From assembly GCA_037379345.1 (NCBI GenBank), contig CM074519.1:38404103-38468102 (forward strand): a DNA stretch of 64,000 bases, written 5' to 3'. A program made the translations under genes and the position numbers. The stretch's first letter is position 1. Every line of letters begins with the position of its first letter. Positions 13,101 to 62,738 of this stretch are shown here, piece after piece. A model generated the notes under the pieces. That model did not search any database. It was not told the DNA's origin and was given only the letters and a program-made list of their open reading frames with translations. The stretch is from Perna viridis. Taxonomy: Eukaryota.

Positions 13101-16100
13101 AACCTGTTTACCGATTAATAAAATGTGATTTGTCACCAGAAGTGATAACGAGCACTCTAAGTTGATACCTAGTCAGGTTTCTGGTCAATCTCTTCACACA
13201 TTACCTACTGTGGGTATAATTTATCCAGAAATACAAGTATCCTAATTTCACATATTTTGGTGTGAAATGGACATATGGTCAGGGAAGTGGATTGTTCCTG
13301 CAGCCCACTTCTCGCTAGCTCTGTGATCGTTTTCACCTACAGTGAAATGTGTCAACTTTGATTTGGCGGTGTGTTTTATCTTTTTAATTACCAACAAGTG
13401 AACTAGATTTTTATGTAATAAATATGTTATGGTAGTAACGACCCCAGAGGAAAATGGTGTAAATACAAGAGATCTGAAGATAGACACACATGTTCTTCTT
13501 TTGTCTTTTTCAATTTTCAATTTATCACAATTTTTCATCAAAATTAAAATAAAAGAACTTTTACACTTCTGTTCAGTCATTCTCACACCTCGCTTTACGA
13601 TGTTAAGAGCATTATTTCTATTTCGAGATATCTAAATTTACCATCAATACAAAAATAAAGAACTTTTACACTCGTGCTCCAAGAATTTCACACTACAATT
13701 TATTACAATTGGAACCTAAAATTGATAAAATCATGGCCCTCTTCAAACCAATGTCTTTGAACAAAAATTATTATAACACCTTTAAATAATGGCTTGATCT
13801 AAAACTGATCATAAGGTGTTCGTTATCTTTCTGGCATCAGGGCGCATAATGCATAACCAAATTCGTATGAATGCGTTCTACAACTTTGTTTACAATCATA
13901 TGTAATTTGGTTTTTAATATTTGACCTGTTTCAATGCGACTTATTTTCAGTGTGTACAGTATTTCTTATCAAACCCAAGTGTACTATAGTCGAGTAACTA
14001 AAAGTTTCTCCATAATACAGAGAGTTTAGTGCTAAATATATGGTATCAGTCTCAAAATTATTTCGATATATGTGTATGTTCAAATAATTACGTATTATTG
14101 AAGTTGTACAATTTTATGAAATAGTCTTGGGTTCTGATGAGATTATTAATTAAGGGATAAAATTACATTGAAATAAAAATTCTATATTATTAATGTTCGA
14201 TAATAAGGTCCCCAGGTAGTACTTAAGTTTCTCCATCTGGTTATAAATGGTATGAATAGTTTTATGAATTCCCAATAGAACAACACAATATTTTTTTGTG
14301 TCAAGGGGCATGGTAAATTAAGTATTTCGTTTCCTGGTCATATGAGTGCACATTTTAGTAAGGATAATTGACAGCAGAGTTCGGGATGGAGTTATGACTT
14401 GTGATACGGTCATCAAAAACTCTGAAAAGAAAATTACAGGCGTTTTTATAATTAAACAACGAGTGAACATGGTGTGAAGTACACGGCTACTGAAATTATA
14501 CACCTTAATATGGCTACTAATTGTAGGCTGTGTTCTAAAACCTCCAAATAACTCTATTAACTCATGAGTTAAACCGGATCAAGTTTCTTCTTCGACATTT
14601 GATTTGTCTTTTAGACTCGTTGGTCACTACACTTATTCACCTTCTTTTGGAGACGTTGAATATCATAATTCATATCAGTTCGTGATGGCTTGTGATGTTT
14701 TATTTTTGTTTGCTTCAATTTAAAGGATTGAGTTTATAAAAGAAGCTCTAAATTGATTTGAAAACGTCAAAACAGACACTTTAAACTGAAAGATAAATTT
14801 CTTATCGAAAAATGCATGATATTTCTTTTTAACGGATTTGGCTAAGGCGAACGATGTCGACGATTAATAAATCATAAATATATAATATTTTAAACATATA
14901 AAGATTCTGAACACTTTCTAAAGATTCGAAATTTACTGATTTGTTTTGTTCGTGCATTATATTTACGACAACATTTCATAATAAAAGCAATAATAAAGAT
15001 AATTTAACGAACAGGAATTAAATTTTATTATTTTTCTGAAAGGCGTCTAATAAAATAATAACGTCTATTGAAGAAAGGCCAATCTATCTATATGTAGTAC
15101 ACGTTGACAGAAAACACACTTCGCCTTTTATTTAGATTGCGCAATACTACAAGACTTAACGTACCACATATCATTATCATTTAATGTTCTCCGTGATAAT
15201 AAATTATATCATGTAGTTGTGACTAACGCCGTAATGTACAGTATGTCCAAATTTGTCGCCGATTAGTCGGGTTGACCATCATGTTGAATGCCTGTTGATT
15301 TATGGACGGTAAAACTTGAAGATTTATTTAATAATCTGTTTATAAAATGAAGCAAAGCTTTCTTGAGCCTTATGTGAGACAGTTTCTTGTCGCTTGATTC
15401 GCAATATTTAAAGCTGAAAAAATGACGTGCATTAACAACAGTATGTTTTCTATAACCCAACAATATTTGCTGCAACTGATGAAATTTCGCATTTTTTATT
15501 GTTTTTTTTAATACACGTAAGATCATGATGGTTTATGAATGTGTCTTTGTCAAGTGAGTTGCTTGCACAAATCCTGTATTTTGTGGCAATGTTATCGGAA
15601 CAATAACTCTTGACATGTCCATATCTACCAACAATATCAGTGCAGTTTTAACGATTTCCAATGGCTTTATACTGTCTGAAGTTTTCTGTCTCCTAAGATG
15701 AAGCAACGAAAAGTTTGATCTGAAAACAAGATTTTATGGATCTCTCACTGGCTTGGTGTTATGTTGGATAGATACATCTGATATTTCTATCTTTTATTAC
15801 GTTACAATTGACTGAAGTATGCATCACTTTTCTAATCGAATGTTAAAAGTATTATGTGTCAGAATTACCATCTATTCAAAGAAAGTTGACATTTTTAATA
15901 TGAATAATTAAGTTCAAAATGGTTTTAATAATCCCAATCATTATTCAACAATGGAGAACTCAATTCTAGCGATCTCAGTCAATGTGAATATTGTGTCGAG
16001 TCTAGTTACGCAATGTTCTATCGACAGGACCAGTTTCAGGCAACCAGAATTGATGGATATTGTTCTTCCATACAAAAATGGCGCCAGGTCTAATAGAAAT

Positions 16101-29658: not shown

Positions 29659-31119
29659 GTGAACATAATGTAGTAGTATGATCGGTGGACACAATTCTCC
29701 TCCTTCATCTCGTTAATTCACAAGGTCATGTCAATACCGAGAAGCAAGCAATTTATCATAAAGCGTATTTTAAAAGTACTAGCTTTGGAATACTATATAT
29801 TAACTATAATAATAGCAAAAGTCGAAAACTTTTGTGGTCATGAGCAAAGTGCAAATATAATACAGAAAATGTATTAGTCATGAAGATATTTTTTCCCTAA
29901 AATTCAAATCATTTTATGCATGTTCAAACAAAACTTGAAATTCATGTTAAATTGTGTAATTGCACACAATTGAACTGCTATGAATAATAAACTTTTACTT
30001 TAAAAATAAGTCAAAAAAAGTGTCTACTTTCTTATCTTTAAGTAGCTGTAATAGTCAATAATCATTTCATATTACTGCGATTTACTGAAATGATCGTCTG
30101 TTTTATCCAGCCAATTATAGTTCTGGGTATATCCAGTTTCCGCTTTGGCGGACGGCATTGGGTGCAGGCGATGCCCTGATAACGGTTATCACCATAAACA
30201 TATGAATTTTGATACAGTTTTAAATATTGTAAAATTAAGATAGATTGTAAATTTACAGATTTGTATTTAATCAGGATAACATGGCGAGAATCTGAGGCGA
30301 CATTAACAATCAACTACGGTCTGAATACACCAACCTATCTCCATATAGATTGTAACATGGAAAGTGTGAATTAAAAATATATCCAAAAGGCATAGATTAC
30401 AAACCTAAATGTTCAATAATTAGTCGCTAAGTTTAAATATTTTTTTGAAATTACTACAAAGTGAAAGCGATAAATTAAATAATCTAAAAGACTGATTCAT
30501 CATTTAAATTTTAGATAATATAAAGATTAGAATTGTTCAAAGGTGAAAGTTATTAACATAAACAGAGAACCTAAAAGACTCCTTGTAGTCTCAAAGCTAG
30601 AAACATTTCGTCTCGTTTAAACCTAAATATTACTTATACAGGCGTCACCGACTATCAGATGATTGCAGAATTTCAATATTCCTGATGAGATCAGCTCATC
30701 CAGCTAAAATAATACTATTAAATGCCTGGGTAGATTTATAATTCAATTTTTCACTTTCTAATTGACTAACACTGTCCATTCAATTCTAACTGTGACCAAT
30801 TGTTAATTCAAATTATTAATAAATATTTGAACCTTTAAACAAAACTTGAGGCAGTTTTTCTCACCTCGGCAGCAGTGGTTTATATAATACCGTAACCGAT
30901 TGTCTTGAGACAGATTGAATTTTAATACCATTTTGTACGCGTGAAATGTCGTTAAATTTTATAATTGTTAAAACTATAATCTGTTGACTTACATTAATAC
31001 AGTGTGGATATCCATGTCACCAGCAATGTACAGTAGAACAAAAGGCGGGTAGACACCGCAGGTTGTAGAACTACTATGGTCTTAGTTCTTACACTGTTGA
31101 GAAATTTTTAGAATTGTCG

Positions 31120-31269
31120 AGAAAGGGTAATCATGTCTCTTGTCTTTACCGTCATCAAGAAATGGTAATCGTGTCTCTTGCCTTTGCCATCATCAAGAAA
31201 GGGTAAGTATGTCTCTTGTCTTTGCCGTCATCAAGAAAGGGTAAGTATGTCTCTTGTCTTTACCGTCAT
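31120..31269. repeat. 38-bp minisatellite x4
   Basis: GAAAGGGTAA(T/G)(C/T)ATGTCTCTTGTCTTT(A/G)CCGTCATCAA starting at 31121, 31159, 31197, 31235. Confidence 0.9.
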
Positions 31270-33360: not shown

Positions 33361-34679
33361 AGTACGTCAACGTGAAGAGTGTAGGAAAATAAAGGTATTC
33401 CACTCTATTTATACGACTAGAAATCTCGGAAATTCATGGTGGTCACATGATCAAAACGAGACATCTCGGAAGAACCACATTAATTTCATTAAGCTTTATA
33501 AAAAAAACTCTTTGATGGCGTATTATTTCATATATAATCTACATATATCATTTCAAATATAAAATACAACAGAGCGTTCAAATAGCAATAATTTAAAAAT
33601 AGGGAGAAATGTATTAATAAATAAAGGCTTTCTTTAAGCATCGTGAAATACCCAAATAAATATATAACGGCGCCTTCAATTACAGACAAATCCGTAATGT
33701 TTAAGAACTGTAGTGTTGGGAAGTCGAGCCTTTATTGCTTCATTCATTGACCCGCGCCAAAATTACGGTATAAAATTCATTAACGCATATGTTGTCAGAG
33801 ATAACCTCATGTATTTATACAAACAATCTGATTGGCTATTACCAGTTTTGACTACAAATCTACTGGTTGCTTTCCGGTGTCATAAGTGGATTATCATATT
33901 GTGAAGCAGCCGCCGTAGTATATGATTGCTGCTTTCTTATGCGTAACAATCCTACAGAGACATATTTCTAACACTGGAATATACTACTTAAAATATCAAA
34001 GATAGTTTACACACGATAACAAGAAATTTGTCTGTTTTAATTCTCCTGTAATTGTCTGTTGATTGCCTTCAATGTCTTTCAATTTTGAACTTGGAATACT
34101 TATTTTACAGATAATTGAGATTACGGTTATTGTGCACGCTCCGAATACCGAGATATCTTGCGAACTTTTAAAAGTTTCCCCCTCCATTTTGGGCACATTT
34201 ATACATATCCATTTAGGAGAGTAAGCGACTTCAATGTCTTGTACAGATTTTTAAGTCTGATTTTTTTGCGACTGAATTATGTTTTTTCTTTATTTTATTC
34301 AGCATGAACAACCTTACAACTCCAATTTTAATGCAAACACGACACTTCCGTTTCCAAACTGTCTTCATCTTAAAAAAAAAATCTTTTCCCTGCACATGCC
34401 ACTTATCAATATGTTCATTGATTGAAAAAGTGTATTTTTGAAATATTTTCAGATGCTTGTTACCGTTTCAAAAAGACCTGTGCAGGGCTTTTTATTGTTG
34501 ATTAATTTTGAAAAAAAAAATTCTGAAAACAATATAAATGACATCGTCAAAACTTCGTTTTTGCGTTAAAATTATATTGTCCTCGCCTGAAAAAATAAAC
34601 AAGTGCGAGCGTTCACCCAAGTATTTCCCTTTGTTAATTGTATTAATTGTATTTTTTGTTCAACGTGTCAAAGTTTTCC

Positions 34680-34905
34680 TTTCCCCTTTCGTCTACTCCG
34701 GATTTGACTTTTTATTAGCATCTTGGTTCAGGTGTTTCTAGAAAAGCAGAGGACGCTTACCCTACCGGTGCACCTGGTCCATGCTCCCAGGTTTTAGTGG
34801 AGTCCGAGTACTCATTTACTTGTTTTTGTCTGTTTTCCATGTCTGGTCTTTGTCCCTGGATTACATTTTTTTCCGTTTGAATCTTGGTACTCTTCATTAC
34901 TCTTT
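34680..34905 (+). mobile_element. PLE-associated 3' tail repeat, copy C
   Basis: CAGGTGTTTCTAGAAAAGCAGAGGACGCTTACCCTACCGGTGCACCTGGTCCATGCTCCCAGG...GTCTGGTCTTTGTCCCTGGATTAC; internal deletion. Confidence 0.85.
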
Positions 34906-37429
34906 TTACTGGAAAATTCTTCACTATTAGTTACACAGAATGTTTAGAAGTCACGTATAATTTGTTTTGAATATTTTGTCTTTATTGTATTTTGAATACA
35001 TCAATTCAAAAATTATCGAAGCTTGAATTTATAAATTTTAAGGTTTACATTTCTTTATACGGTGTTTTTTTTTCTTCAAAGATTGAATTGAAAATCGTCA
35101 AAAACTTAAATTTGCAATTATGATTTAATCTATGATTAACATCTATTTATAAAATAGAAAATACTGTCTGAATCAGACAGTGTGTATCTGAAGACGTCTG
35201 ATATATAGGTTTGAATGGATTCAGCCACTTATATCGATTTAACTAATTATAATATCACTTTGATAATTTCTGTTACAACACGACTACTTCAGTAGATATA
35301 TAGATAGAAACTTATGTTGTCAGAAATTGACAAATCTCACGGCTTTGACGTTCAGGATTGTTGTCGCGTCGATAACTTCCGTAGATTTAGGATATTGATG
35401 TTACAATTAGCGTACTCTCCTATTTCAGAATTATCACGCTACAATTTCCACAAGTTTGACTTAATGTTACGTGTCAAGCTGGAGTTAAATACACAAACGA
35501 ATGCATGACATTACAACTGTTTTGCAAAATGATAGGATCTGAGTGATGAAAAACGTCCCTTATTATATTAGCTTGGTTGGTTATCAGTGGTGGGAATCTT
35601 ACTATCAAAAAATGTATTCAAATTAAACCATATTCTATTTCACTCATCAAAAACAATTTGGAAACATTATCCTATTCGTCTCTTATGAAATTGATTTTTT
35701 ATGATAAATGTTCATCAATTAGGTTTTGTTTCAATATGTGTTACTTCACAATCTGAAGAATGCCACTTCAGTGATATAGTAATAGCAATGTTTTTATACT
35801 TATTACATTAGCTGGCTGAAATAACCGCTTTCACGCAATGTTTGTACCCAACCGTCGGCAGTGACGCGTGTGCAGAGACATCTGTAGTGTCTTTGTTATA
35901 TTACTAACTGTTCTTTGATATCTCACTGCGAAGCTGTTGCTCATCAGTTATGTATTGTTTATCCATTTTGGGTCTTATTTGATTTTTTATAATGTCAAAG
36001 TTCATGCAATCTTTGAGGAAGTATTTTTTTCCCTGCTGATTGGAGACTTCACATCTCCAATGCAGATGGTACGTGTGCCACAAGTTTTTGTACTCATATT
36101 TCGGCGATTTTGTTTGTTTTTGTTTGTTTGTTTTTATCAAACTCTTATGTAAATTTTTTGAAATTTATTCATAATCATCATACAAGCTTCTTGAACTAAT
36201 GTTTGTCCTTTTCCTCCTTTTGATCCTTGTATCTTTGCTTTTGCTTTACATAGCCAATAATGTGTTGTACTGTGAACTTGAACGCTGTAATAATGTGTAG
36301 ACGGATGCTTCACGGTTTGTTCAATGTTTCACAGTTACAACTAAGTAATCAACTAACGGAGAGAAGAAGGCAGACCAGTGCTATTGTCGCAAGTTTTAAT
36401 TTTGATACATCAAGAAACATAACATTCTCACATTCTTTCTTCCAGAACAGAAGACCTGTCTCTGGATGTGTGAAAGTATTAGGTGACTGTACCTTTATCG
36501 CCGTGAGAATGTGTATTACCTTCTCACCTGTATTGAATTAGGACAATAACTGTAGACCAAGCATGTAACACTTTATTGCTGAAATCTGCTGGGTTTTCAC
36601 ACTTCTGCTTTATGTATGTAGATGATAAAAAATTATGAAAACTCATATATCTGAGATGTTTTGTATATGTGACATTGTCCGTGTAAAATCAGGCATGGCG
36701 GTATACATAAAATTTCGCTTTATCACTGAAATACATGACAATATAAGAAAGTACAATTTACTCTAATAATAGTGTTTAGAAAATAGAATGAAAAAATAAT
36801 GAAAAGTTGCATTCTTACTCGATTAACCGGGAAAAATAATGACGGGAATTTGAATAACTTTACGTCCGTCTTGCTTTATTATCTTAGATCAGCACTATTT
36901 TAAAATACAAATGATTGTTTCTAAGGTGCGTTGAATATATTCCAGCTTAATTCGACAAAGTTTTTGTTCTATTACTGTTATTACAGAACCCCCCTGATTC
37001 TTATATGAATCTGTATTTAGTAGCTTTGGCAGCGTGTTGCCACTGGAAAAAAACGATAAGAATTATATACCCTGAAAAAAAGTAATCCAGTGGAAAGCTA
37101 CTATCATTCTTGGATATTGCAAAGGATAATCACCTCATTGAGCATACACCGTCTTGCTACACAATTAACCATGGTAGGAGAAAGCGTATTATGTAATTGG
37201 TAAGGGGTAGAGCTCTACGCTTTTCCCTAGAAACCAAAACTGACAGAAACAGACACTGTACTATTGATGGAGGTTTGTACGGAACAACTAATGGATTCTC
37301 GTTTGGGTTCATAGGTGTTCTGTGGCAAAGAAAACAAAATGATAATCAGTAGTTTCACACATACTGACATTACATGGTAAAATGTGAAAATTCTGTTGCG
37401 AAAACATATAATGTATAAAGTCTAAAGGA

Positions 37430-38460: not shown

Positions 38461-39645
38461 GACTTAATCGGGATGGTATGCCAACAATAACGAACAGCAA
38501 CGAATTGTATTACCGACCGCCGTGTATGCTTGTGAAACCTGGGATAATCTGACTTTTACCGAAATTCAGATGCTTGAACAAACGCAGCGTTACTTTGTTC
38601 GTTTTATTCTTGGCTTTGATAGACAGTCACCGACAGATTCGTGTATCTTCAATATTGGATTGTGGTCAATCGAGGGACTAATTGACAAGTTTAAATTACT
38701 TTTGTTTGGTAGATTTTGCAGAGTCAAACACAATACAACACATCAACAATTATTCTGTATCTGTTTAGGCCAGATTTTTACTGGAGATTGTAATGAAAAC
38801 TCATTGACATATGATATGATAAACATTTTTATTAAATACGATGTTATGTTTCCTGGAGTGTTTTCATGAGGATACTTTTATTCCCGACAAACGACTTTGG
38901 TAAAAAAAAAAAAATCATTAAACAGACAATAGACATTCAGGAAGAAACTCGATGGAAATCATCCATACAAAATTGTCCGGGACTTGATAGGTTTTACCGC
39001 ACTCACAACACGTTAACCGAGCATAGAATACTTCGTCTAACATCGGTGAATCCAGAACTAAATCAGCAACTGCTGGTCATGGACAAAATAGGATCTCTAG
39101 CTATTAAAGAGGGAATATGTACCATGTGTAATCGTTACCAACATGACATAGTGAAACATTTAATTCGAAACTGTGAACAACTTATTGATGAGAGAAACAC
39201 TATGTTCTATTATCTTATTGACATATTGCCAGTTTAGCAAACCGTAACGTTCTTCCTTCAGGACGAGGACGATATACTTGTATCCCTACTCGGTGGAATT
39301 ACTGACTTCATAGATACTCTAGAATCCAATGAGTGGAAACACCTGATGTACTCTTTGGCAGATCACGTTTATAAAATGTACCTCAAATTCAAACCTGTTT
39401 TAAGCAACCATAGATTCAATTTTGCTCACTGAAATGTCATATATATTTTTGTACTTGATTTTTTTTCTTTTTTTATAATATATGATTTAATTTGATGTAA
39501 ATTGTTGTTTTTTGGTTTTTTTTGTGTATATTGTTTACTAATTGTGTCCCTTTTGTATGTAAATTAGTGTTGTGCATATAAAAAATGTAACTCATCATTA
39601 TTGGTGGAAATAAAGAAAATCAATCAATCAATCAATCAATCAATC
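38461..39645 (+). mobile_element. 5'-truncated non-LTR retrotransposon (LINE) ORF2 3' end with (AATC)7 tail
   Basis: RIVLPTAVYACETW...MLEQTQRYFVRFILG...IDKFKLLLFGRF (post-RT region), zinc-knuckle CTMC...HLIRNC, LLGG, terminal stop 39430-39432; frameshifts and an internal stop at 39235-39237; AATAAA 39609-39614; (AATC)7 39618-39645. Clade not assignable by eye. Confidence 0.85.
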
Positions 39646-39825
39646 ATGCTTAAAAGTTGACGACGAATCAAATAACATATTGTTAAGGTAACATGGCTTT
39701 ATGTTTAAATATGTACATGACTATGAACATGAAAGGATAATTACAAATTATTATACAAAAATATATGCCATCTTGTGTGTTTATGCAAGTTATTGATTTT
39801 TAATGATGTCAGTTGATTTTTTTAA

Positions 39826-40017
39826 CCGGCGCACCTGGTACATGCTTCTAGTTTTTACTGGAGTCCGAGTGGCTCATTTACTTTTGTTACTTTGTATGTA
39901 TTATTTTAGTTACTTTATGTTCTATGTTTTGTTTGTCTGTTTTCCATGTCCGGTCTTTGTCCCTAGATTACGTTCTTTTGATTTCCGCTAGAATCTTGGT
40001 TCCCTTGACTATCCTTT
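39826..40017 (+). mobile_element. PLE-associated 3' tail repeat, copy D
   Basis: CCGGCGCACCTGG...GGAGTCCGAGTGGCTCATTTACTTTTG...AATCTTGGTTCCCTTGA. Confidence 0.85.
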
Positions 40018-40810
40018 AACAGAAAATACGCGAACAAAATATATCCTAGGAATATCAATAACTGATGACCACGTGGGTTTTGTCCAGAAGGAAAATATGA
40101 GGAATGAATTTTGACTTTCGTGGTATTTGGAAAAGAGGCACTTAATTATTTTCAACATCTATCAGTGTAGCATTTTCAGTCCTACCTAGACATTATACAG
40201 CCTTCCCCGAAGACATATAATAAACGACCAAATACGGAAAAAATGTGTTATTAAGATAGAAATTACTCTTAATAATGAAGTGACGATGTGGTGTAAATAT
40301 CAACGAGAGAACCACCCATGTAGGCTTTCATAGAGACACGAATGACGACTTAACAGTAGCACAACGCATGGTCCCATTGGCATTTAACACTTTTTAATTT
40401 TTTTTTTGTGTTATCCTGTTATAATGTTAACTATTTTGTCCCATTTGATAGGACTTTTTTGTTGTTACATGTGTCTAGGACGAGCGTGATATCTGTCCTA
40501 GTTTCTGAAAATATCAGACTAGAATTTACAGGAATTTAAAAAAAAAAGAATAAATAAAATGTCAAAAAAACTATCTTCATTAAAAGCAAAGGAAGTATTA
40601 ATTATAAATGCATAACTTGTTAATTAAAAAAAAATGCAAATGTGATACACTAAAAATATTTAGTGTGCACTATTCTTGATTGCGCATTTTCGAACAAGAT
40701 TTTGCTTCTTCAAGATAAAAATAAGAACTCGAAAATGGCGTTTGCTGTTATGTTAGTAGCGATAAGAACCAAAGTTTCCCTTCCCTCCTAATCTACACCG
40801 GAAGTGATAT

Positions 40811-40986
40811 TTTATTTGCAACTCGGCGGGTGTTTATAGAAAATCGGAGGACGCCTAACCTACCAATGCACCTGGTCCATGCTTCCAGTTTTTAGTAGAA
40901 TCCGAGTAGCTCATTTACTTTTGTTGCTTTGTATGTATTATTTTGGGTTTTTTGTTCTTTGTTGTGTTTGTTTGTTTTCAGGTCTT
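40811..40986 (+). mobile_element. PLE-associated 3' tail repeat, copy E (3'-truncated)
   Basis: GCAACTCGGCGGGTGTTTATAGAAAATCGGAGGACGCC...GCACCTGGTCCATGC...TCCGAGTAGCTCATTTACTTTTG. Confidence 0.8.
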
Positions 40987-41659: not shown

Positions 41660-43170
41660 TCTGACTTTATCAATTCAGCTTGTAATCAGTGACTGGATTA
41701 TTTCAACCTGTCCTCAATGACTTGATCGATTCAGAGCTTAATCATTTCAGCTTGTAATCAATGACTAGTTAATTTAAGTTACTATTCTATGGCTTGATCA
41801 ATTCAGCGTGAAATCAATGACTTAGTCAATTCGACTTGTAATCAATGACTTGATCGATTCAGCTTGCAATCCAAGAATTGATCAATGCAGCTTGTAATCA
41901 ATGAATAGTTAATATTATTTACTACAATATGACTATGATCAATTCAGCGTGTAATCAATGACTTAGTTCAGCTTGTACCAAATGACTTGATCATATCAGC
42001 TTGTAATCAATGACGAATAATTCAGCTTGTAATCTATGACTTGGTAAATTTAGCTTGTAATAATGAGTAGATCAATTCAATTTGTAATCAAAGACTTGGT
42101 CAATTCAGTACTTCATCATTTCAGCTTGCAATCAATGAATAGTTGATATAAGTTATTACTCTATGACTTGATAAATTCAGCGTGTAATCAATGACTTGGT
42201 CAATTCAGCTTAAAACAAATGACTCGATCAATTCAGCTTGTAATCAGTGACTTGAATAATTCAGCTTGTAATCTATGACTTGGTCAATTTAGCTTGTAAT
42301 CAATTATCAGATCGATTCAGCTTGTAATCTATAAATTAATCAATTTAGCTTGTAATCAGTAAAGAGTAAATTTAAGTTACTATTCTTTGCCTTGATCAAT
42401 TCAGCGTGTAATCAATGTTTTGATCAATTAATTTGTAATCAATAGATTGATCAATTCAGCTTGTAACAAATGACTTGATCAGTTCAGCTTGTAATCCAAG
42501 AATTGATCAATGCAGCTTGTAATCAATGAATAGTTAATATTAGTTACTACAATATGACTATGATCAATTCAGCGTGTAATCAATGACTTAGTTCAGCTTG
42601 TACCAAATGACTTGATCATATCAGCTTGTAATCAATGACGAATAATTCAGCTTGTAATCTATGACTTGGTAAATTTAGCTTGTAATAATGAGTAGATCAA
42701 TTCAATTTGTAATCAAAGACTTGGTCAATTCAGTACTTCATCATTTCAGCTTGCAATCAATGAATAGTTGATATAAGTTATTACTCTATGACTTGATAAA
42801 TTCAGCGTGTAATCAATGACTTGGTCAATTCAGCTTAAAACAAAAGACTCGATCAATTCAGCTTGTAATCAGTGACTTGAATAATTCAGCTTGTAATCTA
42901 TGACTTGGTCAATTTAGCTTGTAATCAATTATCAGATCGATTCAGCTTGTAATCTATAAATTAATCAATTTAGCTTGTAATCAGTAAAGAGTAAATTTAA
43001 GTTACTATTCTTTGCCTTGATCAATTCAGCGTGTAATCAATGTTTTGATCAATTAATTTGTAATCAATAGATTGATCAATTCAGCTTGTAACAAATGACT
43101 TGATCAGTTCAGCTTGTAATCCATGTCTTGATTAATTTAGTTAAAACCAAGTAACCCATGACTTGATTAT
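41660..43170. repeat. 28-bp satellite domain 1 (TGACTTGATCAATTCAGCTTGTAATCAA) with a 625-bp higher-order duplication
   Basis: About 50 units; blocks 41871-42495 and 42496-43120 nearly identical. Confidence 0.95.
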
Positions 43171-43457: not shown

Positions 43458-43662
43458 AGAGGACACTTACCCTACCAGTGCATCTGGTCCATGCTTTCAG
43501 TTTTAATGCAGTCCTAGTTGCTCATTTACTTCTGTTACTTTGTATGTATTGTTTTGGTTATTTTGTATATGCTCTTTGTTGTGTGTCTGTTTTCCATGTC
43601 TGGTCTTTGTCCCTGGATTGCATTCTTTTGATTTCCGTCTTAGTTCTTTGTATTACTCTTTG
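43458..43662 (+). mobile_element. PLE-associated 3' tail repeat, copy F (inserted in the satellite)
   Basis: AGAGGACACTTACCCTACCAGTGCATCTGGTCCATGC...ATTACTCTTT. Confidence 0.85.
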
Positions 43663-43870: not shown

Positions 43871-44379
43871 TATATAAATGGCGCATGAATATTATCTTTT
43901 GGTTAAATAATATGATTAAGAAGAAAGTGACTAGATAATATAACCTGGTAATCTTTTTAAATACAACATAGTAATCCATGCTTTGTTGGCATAGCATTCC
44001 AATCAATTATTCGTTAATATGAAATTTATGACTTATTCATATAAAGTAATTGTCTATTACTTGAACACATAACCTAGGAATCAATGAATTTTATATAACA
44101 TAGTTATTTATGACTTATTGAAACAATCAGGTCTCCAATGCTTTGTTGGAATGACTGGTTGATATCATTAAGTAATTTACACTGCAAAAAGTGCCATGCA
44201 TGAGAATCAAAAGGTCCGAATCAGATGTGATTATCACACGATTCAATTTACACATGAATATTGCATGATTATCATATAGTTTTAAGTAACATATTATTAT
44301 CGTATGACATTGAATTAGCACATGAGAGCAATATGTGATTATCATATGTGGTCTTTTTGGTTGTGTATGACTTGCTAAT

Positions 44380-45800
44380 GTTATCCAGTAATATAGGATA
44401 TGTTAATGTAACATGATAACCTATGAAATGCCGATGTAATATTGTTAAACATGGTATCTTGATGAAACGTTGTTACCAATGGAATGTTGATTTAATATTG
44501 TCATCCATGACATGTTGATGTAACATTGTAACCAATGATATTTTTATATAACTTTGTAACATATATAATATGTTAATGTAACGTTGTAACCAATGACTTG
44601 TTGATGTAACGTTGTAACCAATGACTTTTTGATGTAACGTTGTAACCAATGACTTTTTGATGTAACGTTGTAACCTACAAGTTGTTGATGTAACGTTGTA
44701 ATCTACAAGTTGTTGATGTAACGTTGTAACCAATGACTTGTTGATGTACCTTTGTAACATGTATGACATGTTGAACGTTGAACCCTATGAAATATTGTTG
44801 AAACATGGTAACACATGACATGCTTAACGTTGTAACCTGTGAAATGTTGATGAAACATTGTAACCCATGATATGTTGATTTAACATTGTAACCAATAATT
44901 TGACATGTTTAACCTCTGACTTTTTTATGTAACTTTGTAACCTTCATGGCGTGTAGATGTAACGTTGTAACTAATGACTTGTCGATGTAACATTGCCACC
45001 TATGAAATGTTGATTTAACGTTGTAAGCAATGGCATGTTGATGCAATGTTGTAATCAATGAATGATGGTAGATATAACGTTGTCACACATGAAATGTTGG
45101 TGAAACGATGTAACCTATGTAACTATATAACCTGTGACTTGTTGACGTAATGTTGTAATCTATGACATTTTGATGATACTATTTAATCTATAATATGTTG
45201 ATATGACTATATAACCTGTGACTTGTTGACGTAATGTTGTAATCTATGACATTTTGATGATACTATTTAATCTATAATATGTTGATATGACTATATAACC
45301 TGTGACTTGTTGACGTAATGTTGTAATCTATGACACTTTGATGATACTATTTAACCTATAATATGCTGATGTAACTTTATAACCAATGGCTTGTTGATGT
45401 ATCTTTATAACCTACGATTTGTTGATGTAACTTTATAACCTATGACTTGTTGATGTAACTTTATAACCTACAACTTGTTGATTTAACTTTATAACCTACG
45501 ACTTGTTGATGTAACTTTATAACCAATGACTTGTTGATGTATCTTTATAACCTACGACTTGTTGATGTAACGTAATAACCTATGACTTTTTGATGTAACT
45601 TTATAACTACGACTTGTTGATGTATAGTTATAACTACGACTTGATGATGTATAGTTATAACTACGACTTGTTGATGTAACTTAGTAACTTATGACTTGTT
45701 GATATATAGATGTAACTTATGACTTTTTGGTGTAGTAATTATTGTTATCTATAACATGTCGTCGAAGTAATATTGTAATTATATACTTGTTAATCGGATA
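44380..45800. repeat. 28-bp satellite domain 2 (TGACTTGTTGATGTAACGTTGTAACCAA) with an 84-bp higher-order repeat
   Basis: About 50 units; ACTATATAACC recurs at 45122, 45206, 45290 (84 = 3x28). Confidence 0.95.
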
Positions 45801-46415: not shown

Positions 46416-46572
46416 AGTCCGAGTTGTTCATTTGCTTTTGTTACTTTGTATGTATGATTTTGGTTACTTCATGTTCTTTGTTGTATGTGTCTGTTTTCCA
46501 TGTCTGGTCTTTGTCCCTGGATTACATTCTTTTGATTACCGCTATAACCTTGGTTCCCTTGATAAACTTTTC
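46416..46572 (+). mobile_element. PLE-associated 3' tail repeat, copy G (5'-truncated)
   Basis: AGTCCGAGTTGTTCATTTGCTTTTG...GATTACCGCTATAACCTTGGTTCCCTTGAT; very similar to copy H. Confidence 0.85.
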
Positions 46573-62526: not shown

Positions 62527-62738
62527 GAAAGAGTAATCAAGGGAACCAAGGTTATAGCGGTAATCAAAAGAATGTAACCCAGGGACAAAGACCAGACATG
62601 GAAAACAGACATACACAACAAAGAACATAAAGTAACTAAAATCATACATACAAAGTAACAAAAGCAAATGAGCAACTCGGACTCCACTAAAAATTGAGAG
62701 CATGGACCAGGTGCACCGGTAGGGTAAGCATCCTCTTG
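62527..62738 (-). mobile_element. PLE-associated 3' tail repeat, copy H
   Basis: Reverse complement CAAGAGGATGCTTACCCTACCGGTGCACCTGGTCCATGCTC...GGTTCCCTTGATTACTCTTTC. Confidence 0.85.

Follow-up and report, generated by a model that had tools for sequence, protein, structure and literature searches.

Naiad-type Penelope-like elements (PLEs), the most abundant PLEs in many invertebrates, have been reported to lack the canonical hammerhead that every other endonuclease-bearing PLE clade has (PMC8557442), and this absence raises the question of which cis-acting RNA Naiads use. The question is posed in concrete form by a 64,000-nt stretch of the Perna viridis genome (hereafter the window), in which a preliminary description had pointed out a repeated tail able to fold into a compact RNA structure and had ascribed it to a Naiad-type PLE. 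That ascription proved correct, the repeat being the 3′ UTR, which doubles as pseudo-LTR (pLTR), of such an element. Naiad PLEs are defined by a permuted domain order, with an N-terminal GIY-YIG endonuclease and a C-terminal RT (PMC8557442). One copy of the element (L048) contains an 868-aa open frame with a GIY-YIG-like N-terminus (..YLCNLCGLKYVGETQERLNKRMCGHRSG..) and the RT at its C-terminal end, and Pfam placed GIY-YIG at ~70-275 and RVT_1 at ~640-900 in four motif-bearing homologues (P0027, P0064, P0004 and P0039). Pieces of the ORF gave no Pfam match; the domains were resolved with the whole ORF and homologues. In long copies, the RT ORF carries the motifs PADKA.., PKLHK.., GIPMGTNCAP and FRYIDDVL and stops ~50 nt 5′ of the first helix (P1) of the structure described below. 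Its RT homologues, which include proteins named from Pinctada imbricata, are 40-76% identical.

The copies behave as those of a Naiad element do. They are frequently 5′-truncated, and occur as partial tandems (window 260-760, L049, L059, L052) and as inverted pairs (L007 and L034). The motif also lies upstream of the full-length ORF, i.e., in the pseudo-LTR position, in L059, L052 and L049, so that, owing to partial-tandem insertion, the 3′ tail is also the pseudo-LTR before full-length ORFs. Domain order, 5′ truncation, pLTR tandems, inverted copies and the absence of a hammerhead were thus all found, as for a Naiad-type PLE. In first-look counts, a 300-nt tail query matched 5,777 times across the genome, the RT >27,000 times and the motif model ~118,000 times. 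At G000:C3:46044164-46061316, six motif matches are spaced by exactly 3,409 bp, forming a head-to-tail array of full-length Naiad units.

The structured part of the tail has the strand order P1-P2-PAL-hairpin-ss-P2′-PK′-P3-P1′. P1 is a long closing helix, and P2 a sequence-invariant helix, CGGGUGY/GCACCUG, with a conserved G.U. The loop of P2 contains two self-complementary segments, PAL1 (8-10 nt) and PAL2 (6 nt). PAL1 is followed by a 4-bp hairpin, the loop of which pairs over 5 bp with bases immediately 3′ of P2 to give an H-type pseudoknot. The fold is completed by a single strand of invariant sequence, ACCCUUCC, and by a further hairpin, P3. The helices, palindrome, hairpins and GGAC/GTCC contact that had been proposed for 34725-34812 are all present there, within a motif copy at 34711-34819 (+; covariance-model hit, 87.6 bits). 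In this copy, the P1 5′ strand (34714-34726) is mutated to ATTAGCATCTTGG (family ATGAGCAACTCGG) and followed by a 2-nt insertion, and the 5′ strand of P2, the sequence-conserved helix with its conserved G.U, reads CAGGTGT (34729-34735; family CGGGTGY). PAL1 is a 10-nt perfect palindrome, TTTCTAGAAA (34735-34744), with the 8-nt core TTCTAGAA at 34736-43. The hairpin (34744-34758) consists of AAGC (34744-47), the loop AGAGGAC (34748-54) and GCTT (34755-58), the 3′ five bases of the loop being the 5′ strand of the pseudoknot (GGAC, 34751-54). Then come the conserved single strand ACCCT and PAL2 (ACCGGT), which occupy 34759-34769 and include the ‘template-like’ segment CTTACCCTACC, the P2 3′ strand GCACCTG (34770-34776), and the pseudoknot 3′ strand GTCC(A) (34777-34781), of which GTCC at 34777-80 is the partner of the loop GGAC. 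P3 (34783-34803) is made up of GCTCC, a U-rich loop and GGAGT, with CTCC/GGAG at 34784-87/34799-802, and the P1 3′ strand (34804-34815) has lost 1 nt, reading CCGAGTACTCAT where the family has CCGAGTTGCTCAT. All of these features lie on the + strand. The copy is decayed, its P1 (GCATCTTGG+TT / CCGAGTACTC) being broken by substitutions, the 2-nt insertion and the 1-nt deletion, and its predicted structure is no more stable than those of shuffled sequences (z=+0.54). For L033:418-516:-, an intact member of this family, folding gave the architecture that had been proposed, at -36.6 kcal/mol (z=-2.4); 4/200 shuffles scored as well. The main support for the predicted fold is comparative, not thermodynamic.

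Six covariance-model hits and two tail-only copies were found in the window, in keeping with the eight tails counted earlier, and the core 16-mer occurs six times against 0.04 expected. The copy to which the 34711-34819 motif belongs (34655-34906, +; blastn to the family reference) is 5′-truncated and retains the last RT codons and the 3′ UTR/pLTR, with ~45 nt of the tail deleted; the family 3′ end is ...CTTGATTACTCTTT. The whole motif is likewise present (40811-40918, 88.7 bits) in a copy at 40770-40979 (+), the tail of which is shortened. Two copies, at 43458-43637 (+) and 62530-62736 (-), are 5′-truncated at the first base of the hairpin loop and one, at 39825-40011 (+), at PAL2, while that at 46416-46563 (+) retains the P1 3′ strand and tail only. 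The remaining two form a tandem/pLTR arrangement: an RT C-terminal fragment (..LQKFYGRHYELVDRYGVSI..) with a tail devoid of the motif (511-760, -) and, directly downstream, a copy in which an internal deletion joins the P1 5′ strand to GCTTACC (260-463, -). The window has other contents as well. Two adjoining ORFs of 115 and 123 aa (38522-39237, +; ..YACETW.., C-terminal CX2C..H..C motif), located ~600 nt upstream of the 39825 PLE tail, resemble the C-terminal part of a non-LTR (LINE) RT and gave no Pfam hit. A 28-bp tandem repeat (AACGTTGTAACCAATGAC..-like) forms large arrays, which show higher-order structure, at 41660-43150, where a 625-bp duplication is included, and at 44338-45663; short arrays of 58-bp and 38-bp units are found at 1739-2116 and 31117-31268, respectively.

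For comparison across lineages, we used the DNA around RT homologues together with metagenome contigs scanned with a degenerate core pattern. In 17 loci from many lineages, the motif was located 26-156 nt after the RT stop, the RTs of motif-bearing lineages being 55-76% identical to that of the family in the window. Across five lineages, mean identity was ~65% in the motif (65.5%), compared with 27% before it and ~35% after it (35.5%). This contradicts the prospect, raised in the preliminary description, of a core no more conserved than the rest of the tail. Representatives of 11 lineages, chosen after the hits were known, were aligned with MAFFT (unfitted), and from this alignment RNAalifold recovered P1, P2, the hairpin and P3, with 15/29 pairs showing compensatory changes. 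With the pseudoknot and palindromes added to this structure for pair counting, 96.1% of cells were paired as compared with 80.5 ± 1.1% after shuffling (0/500 shuffles reached the observed value), and the covariation score was 0.568, against 0.246 for shuffled alignments and 0.07-0.14 with slid partners. Double changes were found in 11/12 pairs of P1, 3/5 pairs of P3 and 5/5 pairs of the pseudoknot, which was 100% paired. P2, at 98.7% paired, was never double-changed; like the single strand, it is conserved in sequence and does not co-vary. Hence the covariation expected in P1 and in the GGAC/GTCC pseudoknot was found across families, whereas P2, for which it had also been expected, is instead conserved in sequence. 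The same trend was seen on all 141 hits, mostly decayed copies, in an alignment whose underlying model has neither pseudoknot nor palindrome.

At least 12 sequence variants of the pseudoknot were recovered, i.e., GGAC/GTCC, AGACT/AGTCT, GGAAC/GTTCC, GAGTT/AACTC, GAGAT/ATCTC and GAACT/AGTTC, as well as GATCT/AGATC, GACAT/ATGTC, ATGAC/GTCAT, GGAAT/ATTCC, GGTAT/GTACC and AGAC/GTCT. The fold contains many G.U pairs, including one in P2 shared by 10/11 lineages; because a G.U pair becomes A.C on the opposite strand, the fold belongs to the sense strand. The comparative evidence indicates that the fold as proposed (P1, P2, AAGC/GCTT hairpin, loop-downstream pseudoknot and CTCC/GGAG hairpin) is real and under selection. 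Taken together, these comparisons show that the Naiad 3′ UTR/pLTR carries a conserved sense-strand RNA domain of ~100 nt with a pseudoknot established by covariation.

The specificity of the search was gauged on bacterial genomes, in which the core pattern made 24 chance matches; 22 of these failed the covariance model (≤17 bits), and the two that passed lie on animal-like contigs and carry further variants. Viral contigs gave no motif matches. The two contigs filed as bacterial are L187 (RAYO01000111.1, 407 nt), which also has an RT C-terminus and is near-identical to a Pinctada copy, and L184 (CBDDTI010000093.1; motif at 5931-6035), and both are probably animal DNA contamination. By the covariance model, the motif is absent from two loci with RT homologues, L054 (40% identical) and L058 (61%). 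The 3′ UTR of the latter (L058:3223-3560) has two ~60-nt direct repeats that resemble remnants of the P2 and P1 3′ strands (..ACCTGGTCCATGTTGTACTCAT..).

A palindrome (TTCTAGAAA) had formed part of the initial proposal. It is present and, beyond what had been proposed, PAL1 co-varies across lineages while staying palindromic. PAL1 is always a perfect palindrome of 8-10 nt, usually reaching 10 nt, with a sequence that differs by lineage. Eleven variants were found at this one position, namely TTCTAGAA, CCTGCAGG, CACTAGTG, TGCATGCA, CGCATGCG, CACATGTG, CTTATAAG, CGTCGACG, CTTTAAAG, CATGCATG and GGCTAGCC, with six central tetramers (CTAG, TGCA, CATG, TATA, TCGA and TTAA), all of them self-complementary. 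Departures from the palindrome are limited to decayed copies, each being a single mismatch seen once. Among the 11 lineages, 4/4 core pairs of PAL1 were double-changed and 97.6% were paired, i.e., self-complementarity is kept by covariation, as in a palindromic, DIS-like RNA dimerization site. Since a hairpin cannot use the central bases of PAL1, the constraint demands pairing between two motif copies, and we take the comparison to imply that PAL1 would pair in this way. PAL2, located just 5′ of the P2 3′ strand, behaves likewise (TCCGGA, ACCGGT, TCGCGA, CCCGGG), its support consisting of only 3-4 variants. RNAcofold favored dimers by 6-14 kcal/mol, as it would for almost any pair of identical structured RNAs.

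PAL1 resembles the HIV-1 DIS and the Ty1 PAL sequences in being a short perfect palindrome that varies by lineage and yet remains self-complementary, which implies RNA-RNA pairing of two copies. The HIV-1 and Ty1 sites, however, belong to the 5′ leaders of LTR elements whose RNA dimers are packaged into particles, whereas PLEs have neither Gag nor particles. Moreover, PAL1 sits in a multiloop and not in a hairpin loop, and its pairing is predicted from sequence comparison.

We then considered whether the motif belongs to a described RNA family. Rfam returned no match to the motif at gathering score (window and 40 loci) or at E≤10 (three copies, decayed and intact). No described structural family was thus matched, no Rfam family exists for the motif, and no description of it was found in the literature searched. 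A hammerhead was rejected: the CUGANGA...GAAA...UH core is absent, there was no Rfam hammerhead hit even at E≤10, and the CUGA-like strings that follow P2 lack conservation, changing along with the pseudoknot. Nor did the gathering-score search detect a hammerhead anywhere else in the window. Twister, including its permuted form, likewise gave no Rfam hit at E≤10 with decayed or intact copies. The string CCUGGUCCAUGCUCCCAGG...AGUGGAG resembles the rice twister, but the hairpin CCUGG/CCAGG that this reading calls for is confined to the mutated copy in the window, other lineages lacking it, and the competing P3 and pseudoknot pairings co-vary. HDV-like, pistol, hatchet and twister-sister ribozymes had no Rfam hits, and the strand order differs from those of HDV (P1-P2-P3-P1′-P4-P2′) and pistol. 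The earlier statement that the fold follows no hammerhead, HDV, twister or pistol layout is therefore upheld. ARAGORN detected nothing tRNA-like in the motif.

SECIS elements deserve separate mention, as those of selenoprotein-encoding Naiads (Craig et al. 2021) are, like the motif, structured RNAs directly after the stop of a Naiad ORF. The Rfam SECIS_1 model found such elements, as a positive control, at L054:3174-3241 and at L053:5143-5206 and 14136-14199 (-), i.e., directly after the stop in the 40%-identical L054 and in a Pinctada locus. It never matched the motif. The AUGA/GA kink-turn quartet is absent from the motif, the AUGA-bearing AUGAGCAAC is fully Watson-Crick paired with GUUGCUCAU in P1 of the intact copy, and the ORFs have no conserved in-frame UGA. 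The SECIS_1 match in L054, a locus without the pseudoknot motif, overlaps the stop of a Naiad-like ORF 40% identical to the family in the window, and fits the published selenoprotein-encoding Naiads.

What, then, might the motif do? The reading that we favor, as a plausible but still tentative account built on the comparative pattern, is that of an RT-recognition handle combined with a two-copy pairing module. P2, the single strand and the base of the hairpin make up an invariant core, the shape of which P1, P3 and the pseudoknot would maintain; by this handle the element's RT, a relative of telomerase RT, would pick its own RNA for target-primed reverse transcription. The palindromes would pair two motif copies, either on two RNAs or as the 5′ and 3′ pLTR copies of one more-than-unit transcript; with templates held together, template switches would be favored, giving the tandem/pLTR insertions typical of PLEs. 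A precedent is provided by R2, the protein of which recognizes a structured, pseudoknotted 3′ UTR. The R2 and stringent-type LINE elements share with the motif a conserved 3′ UTR fold (pseudoknotted in R2), target-primed reverse transcription and low sequence conservation outside the fold. The motif differs from them in its unrelated sequence and fold, in its palindromes and in its GIY-YIG PLE host, and also in its distance of 125-190 nt from the 3′ end of the element. This last feature speaks against the handle, as it places the motif off the priming site. Many genomic copies do not have the motif, which is expected from 5′ truncation and is no proof that the motif is needed.

The main alternative, more doubtful and drawn by analogy, is that the motif would be a new class of self-cleaving ribozyme that replaces the hammerhead in Naiad pLTRs, gaining activity once two copies pair through their palindromes and then cutting more-than-unit transcripts to unit length. 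The motif occupies the same place, pLTR or 3′ UTR, as the hammerheads of canonical PLEs, which Naiads lack (PMC8557442). Canonical PLE hammerheads, located in pLTRs, are active only as dimers via a palindromic helix III (PMC4209133), and PAL1 offers a parallel. The minimal type-I hammerheads of PLEs (Cervera & de la Pena 2014) and the motif are alike in several further respects: both are small structured RNAs in the pLTR/3′ region, both occur once per repeat so that tandems carry two, both have a palindromic segment for two-copy pairing, and both display abundant compensatory changes within families. We file the motif as a putative cis-acting structured retroelement RNA with a two-copy pairing feature like that of PLE hammerheads. 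The two differ in that the motif has no CUGANGA...GAAA...UH core or Rfam hit, in its topology (closing helix, invariant helix, H-type pseudoknot and extra hairpin) and in that cleavage is only hypothesized for the motif. An invariant unpaired core, co-varying helices and a pseudoknot are a make-up typical of small ribozymes; conserved structured RNAs in retroelement UTRs are, however, mostly protein-binding sites, and no Rfam ribozyme family was matched even at E≤10. In addition, the 5′ ends of 3-4 independent truncated copies coincide exactly with the opening base of the hairpin loop, between AAGC and AGAGGAC (window 43458, window 62736 (-), L033:3149 and L034:2285), as would those of run-off cDNAs from a cleaved RNA, and 7 of ~30 incidental copies start ≤10 nt from this base. 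The shared 5′ start could mark the point at which the RNA is cleaved or at which the RT is brought to a hard stop; the cluster is a small post hoc sample that RT stalling could explain.

It is less probable still that the motif acts independently of the RT in stability, processing or localization, i.e., as an xrRNA-like exonuclease stall, a 3′-end signal or a translation/export element, the palindromes then serving RNA-RNA hitchhiking as in oskar or bicoid. Its location in a 3′ UTR and its pseudoknot-plus-junction architecture would suit such a role, as would the many copies whose 5′ ends fall within the 5′ half of the motif (the second-family loci being biased by selection). On the other hand, neither Rfam xrRNA nor other cis-regulatory families were matched, the variable distance of 26-156 nt from stop to motif argues against control of readthrough or termination, and nothing specific indicates a role of this kind.

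Conservation at the DNA level, with the RNA fold as incidental, is very improbable. It would posit pLTR promoter or transcription factor sites (E-box CACCTG, ETS-like TTCCGG) or a site of the GIY-YIG nuclease, and there is some basis for this in that the promoter of PLEs is carried by the pLTR (PMC8557442), that P2 and the single strand show sequence conservation in place of covariation, and that palindromes are typical of protein-binding DNA sites. It leaves unexplained, however, the compensatory changes in P1, P3 and the pseudoknot, the strand-specific G.U pairs and the presence of 11 different palindromes at one position, and the most successful family, that of the Perna viridis genome, has ACCCTACCGGT and no GGAA/TTCC core.

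Lastly, the single strand had been compared to a telomerase template, a resemblance that did not hold across lineages: ACCCTACC is replaced by ACCCTTCC, ACTCTTCC, ACTCGTCC or ACTCCTCC, and what is conserved is A-C-y-C-n-n-CCGG, which is not a telomere repeat. A telomerase-RNA-like template/pseudoknot domain, in which the single strand would be copied as template, is accordingly rejected as scarcely credible, for although PLE RTs are the sister group of TERT (PMC8557442), CTTACCCTACC is 2 nt away from CUAACCCUAAC, and the closing helix, single strand and pseudoknot loosely recall the t/PK domain, no telomere-complementary strand is conserved, half of the segment is the palindrome PAL2, there is no similarity to the triple-helix pseudoknot, and genomic copies show no added repeats of the template-like sequence or other sign of templating.

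With the RT handle and pairing module as our preferred reading, the motif is a candidate cis-acting RNA of Naiads, located where a hammerhead would be, and by analogy it may replace the ribozyme found at that position in related elements. Its covariance model is a sensitive marker for the annotation of Naiad tails, and flagged animal contamination in two ‘bacterial’ assemblies. Were the motif to cleave, it would constitute a new ribozyme class, with ~10^5 copies per genome placing it among the most abundant of any animal, and it would serve Naiads in the role proposed for dimeric hammerheads in other PLEs. The motif thus bears on how PLE RTs recognize their templates, on how PLEs come to insert as tandems and pseudo-LTRs, and on a possible new class of ribozyme.
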